Below are positions 43,634-61,842 of a stretch of 64,000 nt of DNA, one piece after another. Each line of letters opens with the position of its first letter. The first letter of the stretch is position 1. Both the position numbers and the translations under genes were made by a program. Under the pieces are notes generated by a model. That model worked only from the letters and a program-made list of their open reading frames with translations, was not told the DNA's origin and ran no database searches. Source of the DNA: Podarcis erhardii (lineage: Eukaryota); the NCBI GenBank assembly GCA_964252035.1, contig OZ176211.1; one strand, 5' to 3'.

Positions 43634-43795
<162 letters not shown>

Positions 43796-44052
43796 TTAAG
43801 ATTTTTGCTTGACAGTTGTTTTTTTAAAAAATATACTAATGCTGACATAAGCAAACATGGTATGGACTTAGAATGCACTACTGATGAAAATATGTAATAT
43901 ATGCCTGATAGAATCAATATTCATCTATTGCTTTTGACAGAAAATTTAAATATTCTGCAGTTATTATTATTTCATTTCTATATTTTTCTTACATTTTTTA
44001 GAAAAATCTCAAAGCGGTTTACAGTTCTATATTATTTATTTATATAAGTTGC

Positions 44053-44053
<1 letters not shown>

Positions 44054-44091
<38 letters not shown>
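44054..44091. repeat. (AC)19 microsatellite
   Basis: Direct reading. Reads (UG)n on the ICA1 pre-mRNA. Confidence 0.97.
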
Positions 44092-44094
<3 letters not shown>

Positions 44095-44856
44095 CCTTAA
44101 AGTTGACTACAATAGGAAAAAACCCAATATATTGTAGTAAAATATAATGGAAACTAAAGCAGCATAACTGGCAGGTAAAAACGAAGATAGCACATAACAG
44201 CAGTAAAAAAGAAATTAAGAGGATCTTAACTGCCATTAAAACATCATTAAGAACACAAACAAGAGATTGGGATGGGTTTTTCTTGAAAGATAACAATGAT
44301 GTTGCTCAGAAAACACATTTGAAGACGAAGTTTGATAAGTTAGGTGCCATCATAGAGAAGGCCTTTTTAGCAATTAGCTACTTCCCTGGCTCCTAAGCAC
44401 AGGGACATCGGGAGAAGAGGAGGGTAGCCCACAAACTCCCTCAATTGGTAGATTGGCTCATGGTTTCTCCATTCCCAACCACTTCATAGTATTTTAATGA
44501 AATCATCTTCACTTGGATGAGCCTTTTGGAGGTTGTGCAAAAATGGAAAGGGAGATCACCAAAGACCCAACACTGGGAGGGCCCTAAGGGTCCATTCTGC
44601 CTGCAGCCAGGAGTACTTGAGTTCCTAGAGCGTCTCTAGAAAGAGATTTTGTCAACACAGAGTGTGACCAAGTGATGACCCAGTGGAGTTTTCAGTGCTG
44701 AAACAGGACATCTCCACTCAGGTCTTGGCAACATTTTAACGTCAACCAACAAGCAAGCATTGATAGTCAAGTGCCGATTACTTAAATAACTTGCCAATTA
44801 GAGCATAATTAGAAGACAATTCCTGAAAGGAAGCCATTTTATGTAGTTGCAAGACT

Positions 44857-44882
44857 ACACACACACACACACACACACACAC
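44857..44882. repeat. (AC)13 microsatellite
   Basis: Direct reading. Lies ~80 nt downstream of the 96-nt exon donor on the ICA1 strand. Confidence 0.97.
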
Positions 44883-44960
44883 AACCAAACACCTGGAAAA
44901 CTCTAAGCTTTGTATTGCTGTGTTGGTGCACACACAATCAAAGAGTAACGTGTTTGTCAC

Positions 44961-45056
44961 CTTTCATAGGTGTCTTGTTGACGGTCGTGTTCACGCTGTT
45001 GGATTTCTGGGCGGTCTGTGGGACAGGCGTAGGGTTAATGCTGCTGGCTGCCCAAC
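44961..45056 (-). CDS. ICA1: Candidate additional in-frame ICA1 exon (96 nt, phase 1-1)
   Basis: aattttag|GTTGGG...ATGAAAG|gtgaca. Stop-free in the ICA1 frame: GWAASSINPTPVPQTAQKSNSVNTTVNKTPMK. CpG-retaining and codon-like, unlike the flanking intron. Confidence 0.72.
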
Positions 45057-48000
45057 CTAAAATTCAATAACAGTTGCATTTCTGTCAATCAGCTATAATT
45101 ACTTAACGAGCTCACACTGCTCACGACAGTAATAATTGAAGCTTGAAACTCTTCTGTTAAAAACAGTTTCTAAAAATCCTGTCCTGATCTGTTGCTTTAC
45201 AGCTCTGGCTTCATTGCTTTATGTAGGTCTTTACATTTTGTACTTTGTATTATGTTACTTTAATCCTGTTGTAAATTCTTCTTGTGTACTTTGGGATAGA
45301 AATTAAACAACTCTCATTTCCTTACCGGTTACTGCAACAGGGCTGTATTTGAGTCTTGTCTTTTTTTTTTGCATTCACTTTAACTGTCTTGAGTGCTCCA
45401 TCAAATCCATTCATCTACTGAAACTAACAGTACAGCTTGTTTTGACAACTGATATTTTTGAAGTTGTTAGCAGAGCTCATGAGCAGATCTATCTGCTGAT
45501 TGGGAGTGGGGACCTTCAGACTGCCATTTCAAATAGTGAACAGGAGTCAATCCAGCCTACTGTCTGGAAAAGGCTCCCACAACAAACAGGCTCCAGCCCT
45601 TCTGTAATAGATCTGCTAGTATTACTACTAGCAGTTCAGGTGCCTGACACGTACCCTATGGGTCTGTAAGTTTGGTCCAAAAGGGTGGTTAGGAAAAACT
45701 TTTGAATAATGTTACAAAGTAGTGTTCTCCATTGCTAATACAAGCAAAGTTTACAGGGGAAATTGGCCTTTGGGAGAAAAATATTGGTGCTTACTAGCTG
45801 GCTGCTCAAAGAGCAGCTCATGATATGACTAGACGCAAGATTATCAGTGATACATTAAGGAAACCAAACCTCCTACTCTTCTGCCAGCAACCGTACAAAT
45901 GTGGAAAAGGTGAAGCAAGCAGTCATTCTCTTGGCCTCAATTAAATTTAAAAATGGAAGCAACAGCTAGATTGTTCAGCCACAGAAAAAAGCTCCTGTAC
46001 ACATAAATTAAAAATGATTCCTATAATTATTATTATCAAAATGAAATACAGGTAGGAGTGGAGAAAGGGACTGCCTTTTTGTTAAAGCAGTCTTTGCAGT
46101 TAGAAAAGTAGCCAGAGGAGGCAGTGACATAATCAGTGGACTGACTGAAACACACTCAGATCATTTGTTCTTTTTGCCTTCTTTCACCTGCAAAGGGAGC
46201 CCTTCAACAATAACAATTTCTTGCAGTACAATAGTGCCTGGAGGACCAAGTGAAGACTGGGAATAAATGGGTGCAGTAACAATACAGTTTTAAAGGCAGA
46301 CAAAACAGACTGAAAGACAAAGGCTGTGTATACTGGATAAAAGACTAAGGGGACAGGAAAATATAATTACGACAGTTTCCGGTGGATGTAAAGTGTTCCA
46401 TATATTCTTAACCCACGTCTGAAGTGAAGCATGCCTGTATGATGCCTGCCTCTTTGCTGGTCAATGGGGATTAACAGGCATGCTTAGTTGATAAATTGCA
46501 GAAATGTTGTGCACAGGCTGAATTCAGAGGCAACACAAAACCACAGAGTACTTGGGTAAACCATGGTTTGTTTCAATGTCTGAACTTGAGCTTCCCCACA
46601 AACTGATCTGGTTCAGATGTAACACTGAACACTGGGATCTTCAACTGAGGTGTTAGCGTAATCGTAGTTTTTTATTACACCTGAAACCAGCTTTAAGATG
46701 ATTTAATCCCACTAAAGTAAATGAGATGGAAGAAGTCTAACAGCTCTTAGGACACCTCCATTATTATTTTTTAAAAAACAGATACCGGTAATCAATTTAA
46801 TTGATCAGCAATAACTAACGACGTGAACACAGTTAGGAACCTGACTTAGCAGAAGGTTTTTTCAGTCTGCGAGGATGCTTTTGTATAGCATTGTTTGTTC
46901 CAAGGTATTTTATTATTTGTAAATGCTTGGGATTTTACCTGGAACCTTATACAAGCAAAAACATCTGCTCTATTAACATATGATGCCATCAAAGATAATT
47001 AATAGCTAGATGGGAAACTGAGACACAAAGCTAGCAACCTGTACATAACTGCTTTGATCACACAACAGTGTTCTCTAGTTTACTTAACAGGCATTGTGGA
47101 ATAAGGCAGTAATTTGCAGTTGAAGACGACTTGTTTTCTGCCAGTCATACGCTAAACAGATCTCTGAAAAATAATCCTAGCAAAGAGACATTTTCAATTA
47201 ACAAGCAAAGCCTGTGTACTTTGGAAGAAAACCACTTACATTACTAGGAATGGAAATTCTGAAAAATAGTTGCCACGGTTGGCTCCTCAGCCATGCAAAA
47301 TGAGAGGTTACTTGCATTTATAATACACCTTCAATTATTTAACAGGGCATAGCTTTTACTGGTTAACTTAGAAGGAAAACAACCTCTCTCCATATTGTGC
47401 TGGATGCCATAGATAACCAATAGCATTGCAAACAGTTGTGTTCTTTCTGAAGGGAAGTGTGTTGGCAGTAAACCAAGGAGACACGAACCCCAGCCCTTGC
47501 TCCACCCTGATCTCCCTCATTGGCCTTGGGGAAGTCATGCTCTTTCAGCCTGGGGTCCCAGCCTGCACTATGGGTTTCTTAGAAAAGGAATGACATAATT
47601 GCATTTGGCAAAAAAGAAAGCGTTCTGCAAATGTCGTAAATAATACATTTCCCCCCCAGCCGTTCCTTTAAGTGATCTGTGACTGTGTTGCAGCCTCAAC
47701 TGCGTAACAACAAATGTACAAGACTGCATGTTCGAAAGAGTTGAGAAGAGAACAGGCCTGTAGTCCAAACTGGGTGTGGTGGGGTGGGATACAGCAGCCT
47801 TCAATTCAGGGCAAAAGCAAGATTCAAACTAGAGACCTCCTGGCTCACTATTCAGTCTTTTAGCACCAAACCGTATGCAATGCGGAAGATTTGTGAACGA
47901 TAGTTTTCATTTAAAAGTAGCTGATCTACACTGGGGCCACAGTGCTGGGGGAGAAAGGTCTAACCATTCCCCATCTGTGCCATTTCCCGATTTAAAGCAC

Positions 48001-49465
48001 ACTCATCCAAAAGCAGCTATTTGCCACAACAATATGCAGGTATCCCACATCTCTCCCACTCACTGGCTGCTTTTAAATTTAATTGCCCTCCCTACCCTTG
48101 GTGATAGTTTGTAATTAAAAAAGCAGCTACCAACAATCATAGGAGATCCTGTTTGCAGATCTGCCCCACTGTGTCTGGTTTGCCTCTTAGTGACTTAGTG
48201 ACTTTCCTATGCCATATCACCTTAAAAATCTGAGTACTTCAATTCCATTAAGCATCTGCACTACGCTAGACAAAGAGCCCAGATATGCCCCTGTCCACAG
48301 GCCTATTAAGCCAAAGTGCTTGGATTGAAGCCACTGAAGCCTCACTGATGACACACTCCTATTTTAGACATGCCAGTCTTGACAAGGTCCCTTTAACAAC
48401 AGCTTTTTTTATTGCTACTCCAGGCTCTACTATTTTCTTCTACCTGAGGAATGTCAGAGGAATAATTTTCCCATCAATAAATGACAAGCAAACCAGCCCA
48501 CGTTAACACCCTGGAGGAGTTAAGAACCCTTCACACACGTCATCCCTTCACTCTAAAAATAATGAGACAATTTTTTCCTTTCACCCTCTACGCCTCCCTC
48601 CCACAACCACCATCTGCCCAAGAAACAGCGGAGAGATTAACATAGAATATTGGCAGCAAGGAGGCTGGTCTGCTGTGCACGGAGCACTGAAGCAACAAGA
48701 GCTGCAAACTAACAAAGCACTTTCATTCTGAGCCTGTTGGGCAGATGCATCTATTTTACAGCACCAGAGTAGCCAACTGATACTTAAGGCAGGGTAAAAA
48801 TAGGAAGAGGAAAATGCATAAATGAGCTTAGTGTGAGTAACCCAAGGGAAGGAGCTATTTCCTGGAAGGCACACCTACAAACCTCATGGGAGAGTGTCAG
48901 CCTGACTGAGAGAAGAGACCTGATTCAGATGTAATGCTGGCTAAGACCTAGTTCAGCTTTATGTGAACAAGCCTACTTCCCTCCTGTCTGCATGGAGATT
49001 GTAAACATTCATTTCCATTTTAAACTAACTGCAATTTGTTGTTTTGTCTGAACTGGGAACTACAGTTAAGTTTCCCTATGCTTATCCAAAGAAGCCAGGA
49101 TCAGAAGCCATGGCTTGATCCTGGCTTGTTCTGACAAACCACTGTTTATCCTAACCACAGTTTGTCCCAATTTGGACAAAACAACCAACTGGTTAGGTTA
49201 AAATTCCATGCTTTGCATGCAAATTGCCCCTGGTTCAATCTCTGGCATCTGTTGATAGGGCTGGGAGAAACCCGTCTGAAACTACTGTCAGTCAGTACTA
49301 GAGACAATACTGAGTTCGATGGACCAGTTATTTGATCAAGTATAAGGGAGTATACAAAATTAATAATAATAAATTAATTAATTATCTCCTCATGGTTGTA
49401 AAGGGAGAGGGAGAGAGCACTTAAGCCCAAGGTTCATGCACATAACACTATCCTACGGTTTAGTG

Positions 49466-49636
49466 AAGAGCTTTTCAAACTGTGTGTCGCGACATGTTAG
49501 TGTGTTGGCTGCAGTATGCAGGTGTGTCATGCAATCGCTCCCCACGCTCCTCCCGGGGCTGGGGGGAAAATTACTGCTTCGCAAAATGATGCATGTTTAA
49601 AAAGTGTGTCACCAACATAAAATTTGGAAAGCTCTA
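49466..49636. mobile_element. hAT (Charlie-type) MITE
   Basis: TIR-like agagcttttcaaact / aatttggaaagctct. Perfect 8-bp TSD GTTTAGTG (49458-49465, 49637-49644). A relative lies at 62730. Confidence 0.85.
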
Positions 49637-49771
49637 GTTTAGTGGTCATGGCTATATCCTCCCAAGTAAGTATGTGTCTTAGTTCACATGCATTCATGCA
49701 TGGCATAGCGCTCGGCATCAGGTTGGTGGACTGAGCCCATCTGTTTGCTAATCAGCCTAAAATAAACCTAC

Positions 49772-50044
49772 CTTGAAGGGAGGACTGCAAGTCATTCATG
49801 TTTTGGTCTAAAAGCTGAGAAGGAAGGAAGCCTGACGCTGATGACTTATTGTTCTCCATTTCTCCTGCGGAAGAGCTTGTGGGCATGTCAGCAAGTGGGT
49901 CCTCTCCAAATACAGCTGTCCACTCTCTGCTGAATTCGCCGTCGTCCAAAGAAGACGCATTGAGAATCTCATTCAGTAATACCATATCATCCTTATCAGT
50001 AGCCTCAGTCTCCAAAGAATTTGCAAGCGGGTCCATTGATGCTG
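49772..50044 (-). CDS. ICA1: ICA1 exon (273 nt, phase 1-1)
   Basis: ctcccag|CAGCATC...CTTCAAG|gtaggt. Encodes ASMDPLANSLETEATDKDDMVLLNEILNASSLDDGEFSREWTAVFG...SGFLPSQLLDQNMNDLQSSLQ. Confidence 0.96.
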
Positions 50045-50227
50045 CTGGGAGAAGCAGGAGTACCAAAGCAGAAAGAAATCAGAAAAAACACAAGTAAGGG
50101 TTGAGGAAGATACTTAAGGAATGCCCATTCAGATCTACCAGTAGTGAAGGAACTATAGCTCCACGGTGCATGCAGAAGGTTCCAGGTTCAATCTCTAGAA
50201 GTCCCAGTTAAAAGGAACAGGATAGAC

Positions 50228-56469: not shown

Positions 56470-56511
56470 CATTTTCTTCAGGTTTCAAGTCTAATAAGTC
56501 ATCTATGGCTC
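56470..56511 (-). CDS. ICA1: ICA1 exon (42 nt, phase 1-1)
   Basis: tttttag|GAGCCATAG...GAAAATG|gtatgt. Encodes (G)AIDDLLDLKPEEN, equivalent to recalled human GPIDELLDMKSEE. Confidence 0.93.
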
Positions 56512-56711
56512 CTAAAAATGGCAAAACATAAGGGAAAGTTATTGAGCTGTAGGCTCTTATATGTACATTTCATGCTTGCAGTTATACGCTTGCAGTTTTC
56601 TTTGGGCAGCAATCATATGCAACTTGTCTGTCAGTAAGTCCCACTGAACTCAATGCAACTTACTTCTGAGCAGGCATGTATAGGGCTGCACTGCATGTCT
56701 AGGAGACATAC

Positions 56712-56774
56712 CTGAATTCTCTCTGTGGTTGAAGCTCTCCCCAAAAGTACTCAGGATGTCCTTAGTTTCTTCTG
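56712..56774 (-). CDS. ICA1: ICA1 exon (63 nt, phase 1-1)
   Basis: gttacag|CAGAAG...AATTCAG|gtatgt. Encodes (A)EETKDILSTFGESFNHRENS. Size, phase and position match the expected low-conservation exon. Confidence 0.85.
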
Positions 56775-56931
56775 CTGTAACCAAAATATTTTCTAGGTCA
56801 GAATCTAAAGTGCTTTAAACATGGAATGTGCTTCAAAGGTTTTCTAGTATGACACTCTTTGCACTGTTAACTTGCAGTTAGGATTTCACATTTAACCTGA
56901 AACTATCCCAGATAAATTATTTACCGGTGGT

Positions 56932-57061
56932 NNNNNNNNNNNNNNNNNNNNNNNNNNNNNNNNNNNNNNNNNNNNNNNNNNNNNNNNNNNNNNNNNNNNN
57001 NNNNNNNNNNNNNNNNNNNNNNNNNNNNNNNNNNNNNNNNNNNNNNNNNNNNNNNNNNNNN
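56932..57061. other. Assembly gap (130 N)
   Basis: Run of N inside an ICA1 intron. Confidence 1.
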
Positions 57062-58309
57062 CTGGGCACTCACAAAAACTATTTGTGGTTCTTAAAGGGT
57101 CTCCTTTAATTCAGTAGGTTGTATTAAACAGTAGTTATGCTTAGAATGAACCCATTGAAATCAGTTGACTTAAGTAGCTTGAGTTCATTCATTTCAATGG
57201 GTCAACTCTGAGCATGACTACCACTGAATATTACACAATATCTTTCCAAAGCAAAACTCGTTTCACAAAAACACCATGATCTAGGTCTAGTGTACCTAAT
57301 GGGTGCCACTTTAGGAAAGGCCACTGAATCAGTTCCAAATATGGTCGACCATTTACCAAGTTTAATCATTTAAGGAAGTGATAAATATCAGCATTCTAAT
57401 CTTCCTTATTTGGCCATCCTCCCAGCTAAGCTAATCACCAGCACAAGACAGAATGTTGTGCAATTAAGAACATACTGCCAATAACAGAGAAAGGGTTGGG
57501 TTCCTACTTCTGTTACCTACAGATAAAATCCCATTTTGTTCTTCAAAGTATATTTGATGATGTCAAAGTCTCCCCTCAATTTGCAGCTGCAGTGTGATTT
57601 TGATAGTGAGGTGCATCTGTTCCAGGTTAGGTAATTGGTTTACAATGAAATTATTTCAAAAATGCAGACCCCCCCCCCCGCCAGGCTGCCTACAATTAGA
57701 AATAGATTATGTTTTTGCTCCAGTTAATTATCCATAAATCCAGCTGAATTAAAATACTTTTGACGATGTTTGGTAACCTTGCTCTTAGGCCCTCACCTGG
57801 AACAAGTTAAAACCTCAACCAAACCCAGCTCCACCACACAAAAAGCAGGGAAGGTAAAAAAGTCTGGTGTGTTTGGAGAAGCACAGCAGAGAAATGCAAC
57901 TAATTTAGCAGTGGCCCCAATCTATTTTTTTCTGGAAAGAGGTGAGGTGTGATGGTACCACAATACAGGCAATAGCTCTAGCACAGTGAGTGCTGTATTA
58001 TAGAGAACAGGCTGGAGGTCACTCAAAGTTATGGCAGCAAGTAGAAGGATATGGAGGCCTACACTCCATGATATTGATTTTCCAAGGTGCCTTTAGAGTT
58101 GTTAAATAAAATCTCTATTCTTAGATCTCTGCTCTTAATTGATTTCATGTGCTTTGGATTTTTAGAGCTAGGATAAGAAAACCCTGACGGAGACAATGCT
58201 ATATACACTAAAGTAGTTTGCAGGAACAAACTGGCACATAGCATCTATTAGGATGAATGAGAGACTTTTAAGCAGGCTCAACGTTTGAAAGGCATAATAA
58301 AAGAAATAC

Positions 58310-58359
58310 CTGAGCTGGTTGATTCCTTGGTGTGACTGTCCTCATCTAACGAAATCAAC
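58310..58359 (-). CDS. ICA1: ICA1 exon (50 nt, phase 2-1)
   Basis: atttaag|GTTGATT...AGCTCAG|gtattt. Encodes (Q)LISLDEDSHTKESTSS, similar to recalled human QLISLEEENQRKESSS. Confidence 0.92.
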
Positions 58360-60889
58360 CTTAAATTGGAAGGTAAAAAAACAAGAACTTAGTTTATGCT
58401 GTGGTGTAGCATGCTATTGGGGGAAATAATGGCAAAAAGTTACAACTGTCTCTGCCCCCTCTCAGTTTTTACGCACCATGTCACGATACACTTAAATTCC
58501 AAGGTGTTTTCAGAAAACAAAAATATGTTGGCATTTCAGGCAGTAAAGGTACAGTGACAGGAGGATAATCCTTCTAAATGTAATGGTCAGTGCAGTGACT
58601 CAATCAAAATGAGTTGGGGACCCTGTCTAAATTACAATCTCCCCAACTCCCCTAACTCTCTTTGTTGCCCTGGTGATTTCACTTACAGCCGTATTCACTT
58701 CTTCTTCATTTTCTAACTAATGCAAAACAGCATTTTAAAGCAGTCTCACTGGAGGCTCTCACAAGCAAGGGAAGTCAGTGTGGTACCTTCCAGATGTTGG
58801 GCTCCAGATCAGGCTCAGCAGGCACAGCCAATGGTTAGGAACAATGGGTGCTGCTAACAACATCCAGGGGGCGCCATGTTGGCTATCCTTGCTTTTGAGA
58901 TTTAGAACTTGGTTTATTTTGTTTTCTTCTAAAGATTTAAAGAGAGCAGAAGATACTCAATGTTCCGTCTGGAGGACAAGAGGAACTACTCTCCCCAATA
59001 CGGTGTGGAGGGGCCAGCAGAACCACTGAATAAGCAAGAGGACTGATTACATGGCAACTGACGTATACTGGCTTGGCAGGGATCATTGCTATTACTCTGC
59101 CTGCTGTCACTCTGTGATTTTATCTGAACCATGAGCCCAGAGCTGAGGACATATCAGTTGCGTCTTTAGATATGCAAGAACACCACAGGCCAAGTCGAGT
59201 AGCAGAAGCTTTTAGAAATAAAGCTCTGGTGCAAAGCAGGACAGAACAGGGAAGAAGAAAAAGGAAGAACACAACATGAATTTCTGAGCCACTTATGCAG
59301 TCAGGCTGAAAAGGAAGTTAACATCCGTCAACTTATTTATGTGTTCTTTTTGGTGTTCCTCATGCCTGTTAGAAGTGCTTTGCTGACATGAAGTCTCTAT
59401 ATCTAGGAAGAGGCTCCATGTGGGAATTTTCTTCACAGCGGCCTTTCAGAATTTCTCGTATACTGTTAAGTAAGACATTTACATGAACTGTGAAGAAGAG
59501 TCTTAACCTGCTTCCCTTGGAACACAATAGGTGGAGTGAAAATGGCTATCTAGAAAAGTGACTCAGCAGTGGGTGTTCTTAAGCTTCCAAACCAGTAATG
59601 TAGAATCTGATGCCCTCCAGATGTTGTCAGACTCCCAACTTCCATCAGCCCTGGTCGGTGTGACGAAAGGTCAGGAAGAGTGGAAGCTGTGGTCCAAAAA
59701 CATATGGAAGGTCACAGGTTCCCACCCCTCATTTAAATATCCAAAATTAGAAAGACACAAAGCAAAATTATCTAATCTATGTCACACTGCTACTTAAAAA
59801 CATTTCCCCCACAAACAAAAAACATTTTGGAGAAACTAAAAAGCCAACGAAATGAGGTCTAATGACAAACACTGAAAGCTGCTCTTCAATGAATCAACAA
59901 CTAGCCTTCCCTTAACCTTGAATATTCTAAACAGCTGGCCGTGTGATTACAGCAAGGCTCATACCCTCCTCGCTGATTCTGGATGTTTCCATAGAAGGAG
60001 GATCACATCTCTTTCTCCTTTTCACATGTCCCCATCAGCCAAACTACCAAAGATTAAGATACAGCCTATCTGTATAGTGCCTCTTGACACCAGTAACTAG
60101 AATCCCACCAGGCTTAGTTCTCAGGGTATACTCTTACAGCGTACTTGCCGCTGTACTGGATCACTTGCCAAACCCTGTATAGATTACAAAAGCTAATCAG
60201 TGCTCAAAGTGAGCAATGGATATGTTCCAATTCATGTGTGCAATAGGAGCAGTGATGAGGAGGCAAAGTATAGAGAGAAATGTGCTTATATCTTCTGTAT
60301 GATATACCTAAGATGCTTATTACTTTGCTGACCCACAGTATGTCAGTGAGGAAGAGCAAAAAAGGGAAAGGGGCAGCATTCGGGAGCAAAGCCCAGGCAC
60401 AGCAGATAGGTGGACTAATGTAATGTAATTAATATCTATGCAATGTAACACTTTCCCTATGCAAAAGGGCATCTGTAGGGAAACTCATGAAACATGTGCA
60501 TGGAAGGCAAAAGTCAATGTGTATTTTGCATGCCTGCAAAATATTTTTCAAATGTGTTGTCTGCAGGGAAAAATATTACAAGGGGAAAGAAGAAAATAAG
60601 AAAGAGATTCAGCTAGGGGAACAAAAAGATCATAAAAAGGAATGGGTGTAGAAAGGTTCTTCCATTCACTTCAACCAGTTTTTGTGTGTTTTAAAATGAG
60701 AAGGTGATTTCCAGGCAAACTCAGAGAAGCTTCCACCTCCTTCCCACTGTCTTCTTTTTGGGATACTCATACACTTTGGGATTGGGGGGAAATATGCATT
60801 TTCCTAACTGTAGAGCTAAAAATAATCTGAAAGCCCATTGTCATCCACAGTATTATTTTCTTCCAACAGATTCTTATCATATGGCTTAC

Positions 60890-60987
60890 TGATTCTGCTG
60901 ATCATCTTCTAATCTGGCGTTCTCTAGCCGCAATTCCTCCTCTTTTTCTTCACTCTCCGTTAGTTTATTTACAGGCTCTTGTAAGCT
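60890..60987 (-). CDS. ICA1: ICA1 exon (98 nt, phase 0-2), most upstream ICA1 exon found in the window
   Basis: gacccag|AGCTTAC...GAATCA|gtaagc. Encodes SLQEPVNKLTESEEKEEELRLENARLEDDQQN, similar to recalled human SLQDPMKKLVEKEEK. Upstream AH/BAR-domain exons were not found in the window. Confidence 0.9.
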
Positions 60988-61842
60988 CTGGGTCACCCAC
61001 CAATCAATGTATGAAAAAGAATATAGAAAGACAACAAGAAGGAATCCTGAAAACTTATCCAAAGTTGCATTAAAACAGTTTCATAGTGATGGAAATTACT
61101 TTTATCTAAACAGGAAAAATGAGAGCTCCTGAAACATTAAGAGGCCAGCAATTAAAATTCAATGAAAAATAACTTTAATGGAAACAGAATGGAAAACAGG
61201 TAGGTAGTTCGATATATTTGATTCAAATGTAATAGAGATGATTTTCAAAAGAAAAGCTAAATATACACTGTGGCAAATAGGCAGAGATGACCCATCCTGC
61301 CTCATATGCATTAAAAAAATACTGTTAATATTAGGCAACAGAGGCAAAGGGCAGCTTTGATATACAAGGTTCTTACGAATAATCGGTAAAATACCACAAC
61401 AAGCTTTTTCTTGTCTTGTTCCCATCTGTGATTCAACTATGCTACACATGAGAAGACTACTATGTAGGAACATCAATGGTTTTCACTTGGGTATCATGTA
61501 TTTTGGGGGATCTTTGGGAAAATTAATAAATAAAGGGGGGGGGGGTGAGAAAAGAAATGGGCTCGACAACCTGGACAAAATGCTCTATGGGAGCCCACCT
61601 CCCAGACTGTGCATGTTCTCTGCCTCTCACACACATCCCTCCTCCCCCAACCTCCTTCCTTTCTGCTGCCTGATAAGTGAGCGAAAGAAGGGGCTCAAGG
61701 AACAAGATCCCCTTTCTTTACTTTGTAAATAGAAAGAAAAAAGGACCCATTTATCCCCTTCCTGGAGAGAGTTTGTGGACAAACTGGCCAACTTTCCCTT
61801 CTTTAGTTAAGTACGAGATAAAGAGACCTGGCTTACCATGCA

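Follow-up and report, generated by a model that had tools for sequence, protein, structure and literature searches.

A 96-nt segment on the minus strand of the window, a stretch of 64,000 nucleotides from Podarcis erhardii, is, with a probability of about 0.93, a real and ordinary coding exon of ICA1 (islet cell autoantigen 1, ICA69). Its orthologue is annotated in wall and sand lizards and is used across the non-mammalian jawed vertebrates. The exon is already known: over a hundred vertebrates besides the sister species have it in their public gene models. A first-pass annotation, made from the sequence alone, had called the exon 'hidden', which is a misnomer for an exon already in public gene models. 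The same annotation allowed that non-mammalian gene models might already include it, and they do, those of five lacertid species among them. As annotation, the exon is of value only as a check, in that it was found from sequence alone and was already in the public models of sister species. Literature searches found no paper describing this 96-nt exon of ICA1/ICA69.

On its minus strand the window contains the 3' portion of the ICA1 (ICA69) gene (Table 1). The exons of the gene found there cover a 517-aa relative from about residue 265 onward, as placed by tblastn or peptide matching; a 14-codon exon, GAIDDLLDLKPEEN, is one of these, although tblastn overlooked it. The intron that hosts the 96-nt segment, between the exon ending in ...LQSSLQ and the last exon, is 6,016 nt long. 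The donor at its upstream end reads ...CTT CAA G/gtaggt, with the slash at the splice border, and the last exon opens with /AA GCT after a long pyrimidine tract. Between them lies ttttag/GTTGGG...ATGAAAG/gtgaca, with 96 nt in capitals that translate to 32 residues, GWAASS...NKTPMK. The length is a multiple of three, and omission of the exon also preserves the frame. The borders, junctions and translation of the AG/GT-bounded, phase 1-1, stop-free segment first described are exact to the base, and the weak pyrimidine tract ascribed to its acceptor was confirmed as a short one interrupted by purines. The ttgattgac upstream of the exon is the likely branch site. In the donor (AAG/GTGACA) the consensus G at +5 is absent.

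Table 1. Positions of ICA1 features in the 64,000-nt window.
Feature	Position	Strand	Description
Last ICA1 coding exon	43636..43755	-	ends ...LLNA, then stop
96-nt ICA1 coding exon	44961..45056	-	phase 1-1, stop-free, AG/GT borders
Acceptor flank of the 96-nt exon	45057..45096	-	ttgattgac, short purine-interrupted pyrimidine tract, tag
Penultimate (mammal numbering) ICA1 coding exon	49772..50044	-	273 nt, 90 codons, ends ...LQSSLQ + G
Further ICA1 coding exon	about 56471-56514	-	tblastn or peptide matching with lacertid proteins
Further ICA1 coding exon	about 56710-56778	-	tblastn or peptide matching with lacertid proteins
Further ICA1 coding exon	about 58308-58361	-	tblastn or peptide matching with lacertid proteins
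Further ICA1 coding exon	about 60889-61005	-	tblastn or peptide matching with lacertid proteins

The assignment to ICA1, also made at first reading, is upheld by the two flanking exons, both of which encode the ICA69 C-terminal domain (ICAC, Pfam PF04629). The 273-nt exon matches positions 81-167 of the Pfam model (E 4.9e-29) and the last exon positions 205-241 (E 2.6e-22). Positions 168-204, about 37 in all, are left free between the two matches. An exon-containing lacertid protein, the public P. lilfordi P0232 scanned at full length, covers positions 80-228 without a break; this orthologous protein also has an Arfaptin domain (Pfam PF06456, Arfaptin/AH-BAR) at residues 24-251 (E 5.9e-91). 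A 31-residue peptide of the exon by itself has no Pfam match at E up to 1.

The segment is found in ICA1 proteins of a wide range of vertebrates. The upstream exon of the window was searched against 1.84 billion representative proteins, which gave ICA1 fragments and full-length proteins, and word-index searches with region 235-332 of frog P0017 and region 355-504 of P. lilfordi P0232 gave several hundred ICA1 proteins. The exons of the window were searched one at a time, and the full-length comparisons are of public proteins. Among the family proteins retrieved, 267 contain both flanking motifs, and in 244 of these a long spacer occupies the junction. For example, ICA1 of birds (Hirundo, Sylvia), a frog (Pelobates) and sharks (Chiloscyllium and others) carries at the exact junction a related segment that starts G/D-W-A-A..., is rich in proline and serine and ends in N-K-x-P-x-K. 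Squamates with the segment include geckos, skinks, cordylids, anguids, Varanus, iguanians, a teiid, an amphisbaenian and snakes, and all squamate cluster representatives among those listed have it. It has also been detected in tuatara, turtles, gharial, dozens of birds, frogs, lungfish and coelacanth, and among other fishes in sturgeon, paddlefish, gar, bowfin, teleosts and sharks. The presence of the segment from sharks to birds agrees with the first proposal of an ancestral exon. In 122 distinct segments the tryptophan and the final lysine are at least 95% conserved, and conservation is at least 80% for the glycine, one alanine and the N..NK towards the end.

The closest relatives of the window sequence are the ICA1 models of five lacertids, Podarcis muralis (XP_028605473.2, isoform X1), P. 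raffonei (XP_053265442.1), P. lilfordi (CAI5788667.1), Lacerta agilis (XP_033022134.1) and Zootoca vivipara (XP_034984973.2), all of which contain the exon. In these species the segment is present in 28/28 NCBI ICA1 isoforms with both motifs among those listed, which cover 15 of the 33 members of the main lacertid cluster. In the lacertid NCBI models the exon lies at the junction where it is found in the window and is likewise 96 nt long. The peptide of the window is 78-94% identical to those of the five species (the tblastn matches are at 88-94%, E about 1e-13) and differs from the Podarcis versions at 2/32 residues. None of the five has exactly the peptide of the window; all five models have Ser where the window has Asn (...SSIN/SPTP...), together with one or more other changes. 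Residues 6-90 of the upstream exon in the window are exactly those of P. lilfordi P0229 over the extent of the printed P0229 tail, and the P. lilfordi locus shares 97% identity with the window over 6.4 kb around the 96-nt exon. Within the lacertids, the exon differences are all nonsynonymous (0 synonymous versus 2, 3 and 7 amino acid changes), and therefore the middle of the peptide is under weak constraint. The 40 nt downstream of the exon's donor are identical in all four lacertid sequences.

Conservation of the exon is also seen in genomic DNA. The ICA1 loci compared were those of P. lilfordi, Zootoca, L. agilis, Varanus komodoensis, Anolis sagrei, Hemicordylus capensis and the tortoise Gopherus flavomarginatus. 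In 7/7 of these sauropsid loci (3 from lacertids) there is an orthologous exon of exactly 96 nt with AG and GT flanks, identified by collinear alignments, its position between equivalent exons, and equal length and phase. Frame and splice sites are thus conserved in other squamates (96 nt and AG/GT in Varanus, Anolis and Hemicordylus), as an exon of the kind first proposed should have them. Farther from the lacertids, the intron aligns by blastn in isolated islands only, one of which is made up of the exon and its immediate surroundings. The upstream motif ...ttattgaatt(t/c)(t/c)ag can be traced in the lacertids, Varanus, Anolis, Hemicordylus and Gopherus. Across eight sequences the variable columns number 12, 15 and 19 of 32 at the three codon positions, and the most conserved parts of the exon are its two ends. 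Frame and length have been kept for more than 250 My. With the ends, frame, length and splice sites held and the middle free to change, the pattern is therefore that expected for a disordered linker.

An open frame between an AG and a GT says little by itself. A script that listed every AG...GT segment of at least 60 nt, stop-free in the required phase, found 55 comparable phase 1-1 segments in the 6,016-nt intron, 22 of which exceed 96 nt, and the open frame alone was therefore rejected as evidence. These numbers, and a second in-frame acceptor at 45047, are what a pseudo-exon would have in its favour, that is, a chance open frame with a fortuitous AG and GT. However, the peptide homology is position-specific from sharks to birds, the 96 nt and the splice sites are kept in 7 genomes, and the segment is found in spliced mRNA contigs. 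It is homology and synteny that raise the segment above chance. A pseudo-exon is hardly credible at all, and this reading is already refuted by the homology, the orthologous exons and the mRNA contigs. The acceptor at 45047, which would give an 87-nt version, was set aside, as no relative uses it and all keep G-W-A-A.

Nearly as improbable is an artefact of annotation, in which predictors have copied the exon from species to species through protein homology while the real mRNA is without it. Most of the supporting proteins are automatic (Gnomon-type or similar) predictions, able to propagate one another, and this favours such an artefact. Against it stand assemblies of sequencing runs that are independent of annotation. 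Four Logan contigs of 2.3-2.5 kb (L008-L011), from four runs, each have an uninterrupted 523-aa ICA1 ORF that carries the exon, and their protein joins the 90% cluster of Tiliqua scincoides ICA1. Because the gene spans 40-90 kb, these contigs represent spliced mRNA. On the skink-like contig L008 the three exons of the window lie back to back (1192-1479, 1473-1570 and 1569-1649), with no intron sequence between them, and the junctions are therefore as predicted. Logan-only proteins of other sauropsids (P0004, P0127, P0291, P0293 and P0341) also have the segment, and the unchanged frame and length over more than 250 My speak against copying as well. The exon was seen in spliced mRNA of another squamate only. 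The protein collection yielded no lacertid mRNA contig; the sole near-identical Logan match (P0292/L012) was rejected as lacertid mRNA, being genomic DNA collinear with the intron. Sixteen RNA-like runs contain a fraction of 0.15-0.20 of the words sampled, close to the exonic portion of the stretch, a measure that cannot separate included from skipped forms.

How regularly the real coding exon is used in lizards is a further matter. Annotation points to constitutive or predominant inclusion, and most or all of the ICA1 mRNA of this lizard would then include it. The exon is skipped in none of about 60 squamate entries, and both forms were not seen in any one lacertid species, all 28/28 isoforms listed in the annotation including the exon. 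The exon might instead be a regulated cassette in lizards too, with use that depends on the tissue (e.g., neurons or endocrine cells). Several features are of the kind found with cassettes. Skipping of a length that is a multiple of three keeps the frame, purines break up the short acceptor tract, and the donor falls short of the optimum, with G at +5 absent in most lineages (AAG/GTGACA, GTACTC, GTTACA, GTGATA). The intronic flanks are recognisable out to the tortoise, both forms occur in mammalian 90% clusters, and two partial bird models, Podargus P0296 and Phaethornis P0300, skip the exon. A length that preserves the frame, weak splice sites and conservation of the intronic flanks permit a cassette but are not diagnostic of one. 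The skipped bird models, moreover, are partial '-like' models and perhaps projections, and among the entries listed the exon is in 28/28 lacertid isoforms and in all squamate cluster representatives. A regulated cassette in lizards is therefore considered unlikely, though well within reason, and some skipping is plausible given the +5G-less donor and the short pyrimidine tract.

The mammals differ from the other vertebrates in this part of the protein. Canonical, experimentally studied mammalian ICA69 is without the segment, and in the short form LQASLQ is joined directly to EPAKAASDLTAWF. The first-pass annotation had given this direct join for human ICA1. The join stands for the short form, which was seen in non-human mammals, but the exon has not been lost, since predicted carnivore, rodent and hare isoforms carry it as an alternative exon. 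Long predicted ICA1 isoforms, with a homologous GWSESNVSPP...MK between LQASLQ and EPAKAASDLTAWF, have been detected in bears, giant panda, mustelids, sea lions, canids, Sigmodon, Cavia and Lepus. The mammalian segment has 29-30 residues compared with 32 in the window, and in Canis a Cys replaces the near-invariant Trp. It is optional, as 90% clusters contain both short and long forms.

Related proteins also have a spacer at this place. A segment with a tryptophan and a PVP had been ascribed to the paralogue ICA1L at first reading, and in coelacanth ICA1L (P0072) and an eel 'islet cell autoantigen 1-like' protein (P0088) a Trp is indeed followed by a proline-rich stretch at the equivalent position. 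The ICA69 homologues of amphioxus, molluscs and annelids have a spacer rich in P, Q and G ahead of the C-terminal motif. The sequences of ICA1L and the invertebrate homologues cannot be aligned with the segment past the Trp. The long vertebrate spacers, the spacers of ICA1L and the invertebrates, and the continuous Pfam match together show the long architecture to be ancestral, and the short mammalian form would be a derived, skipped form. The long form is thus the ancestral ICA69 protein and, outside the mammals, apparently the standard one. A stricter version, with the exon constitutive in sauropsids, amphibians and fishes but mostly skipped in mammals, and the mammalian ICA69 of 480-483 residues derived, is held tentatively, at somewhat less than an even chance.

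In the protein, splicing of the exon between the ...LQSSLQ exon and the last exon adds 32 residues to the ICAC domain of ICA69. P. lilfordi ICA1 was modelled with AlphaFold2 from an alignment of 32 sequences, over its final 165 residues less the 13 at the very C terminus; the mean pLDDT of the model is 58.5. A helix is predicted over model residues 90-111, which run from LPSQLL to the fifth residue of the exon (the exon begins at 107), in a block with pLDDT of 71-79. The pLDDT is below 50 over residues 114-143, and a short helix follows over the TAWFSLF part of the C-terminal motif. From this model and the conservation, the first residues of the exon, G-W-A-A-S, with the near-invariant tryptophan, would complete the predicted helix that starts at LPSQLLDQ. 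The remaining ~25 residues, rich in S, T, P, N and Q and ending in the conserved N-K-x-P-x-K, would form a disordered linker that separates the helix from the invariant C-terminal motif. The S/T/P-rich spacer that was first proposed, just ahead of the conserved DLTAWF... motif, is in keeping with the pLDDT below 50 for most of it (with N added to its composition). Such a flexible, S/T-P-rich spacer could possibly be phosphorylated.

Functional studies of ICA69, on PICK1 binding, insulin granules and AMPA-receptor trafficking, reportedly use the short mammalian form. If the mammalian ICA69 of 480-483 residues is indeed derived in the stricter sense, the form that has been studied would be without an ancestral helix-capping tryptophan and a linker of ~25 residues in ICAC 84-224. 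The segment may tune the part of ICAC that is reported to bind PICK1. The ICAC 84-224 fragment is sufficient for PICK1 binding and cytosolic retention (Wang et al. 2013, PMC3865253). The extra segment of the exon lies inside this fragment. Under the stricter version, the long form could differ from the short one in PICK1 retention or in dense-core-vesicle function.

Other features of the locus were observed. In an Rfam scan of 43700-50100 the sole match was to SCARNA7, at 26.4 bits compared with a gathering score of 65 (E 0.0025), and was taken as chance. This weak match, at 44839-44968 on the minus strand, overlaps an (AC)13 repeat (44857-44883) and the last bases of the 96-nt exon. An N run (56932-57061) sits in the intron adjoining one of the further ICA1 exons.

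The same intron that holds the 96-nt exon also contains a conserved block at 48217-48811 (minus strand), which is syntenic with Varanus, Anolis sagrei and Hemicordylus and 80-86% identical to them. A core of about 250 nt (about 48600-48370) is near-identical in all four, and thus better conserved than the neighbouring coding exons (79-84%). The block was not found by blastn in the tortoise locus and has no Rfam match. Within it is an exon-like unit of 109 nt, 48552-48444, that reads tttttag/AGTGAAGG...CCTCAG/gtagaag and has stops in all three frames; if it were spliced after 49772, the protein would end one residue later. A conserved non-coding element is one possible identity of the block, a 'poison' or truncating exon another.

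Both ends of the 273-nt exon show variation. Read-through past the donor at 49772 (window 49751-49772, minus strand) would give ...LQSSLQ-GRFILG-stop. The GRFILG tail also ends a 424-residue P. lilfordi ICA1 isoform, P0229 (CAI5788672.1), which is without the conserved C-terminal motif. Genuine retention of the intron, polyadenylation within it or an artefact of annotation may lie behind this truncated form. A tandem acceptor, ccag/cag, marks the 5' border of the exon at 50041-50047 (minus strand), and the lacertid models come in pairs that are one alanine apart at this point (ENAASMDP versus ENASMDP). The tandem acceptor therefore accounts for the isoform pairs of 516/517 and 541/542 residues.
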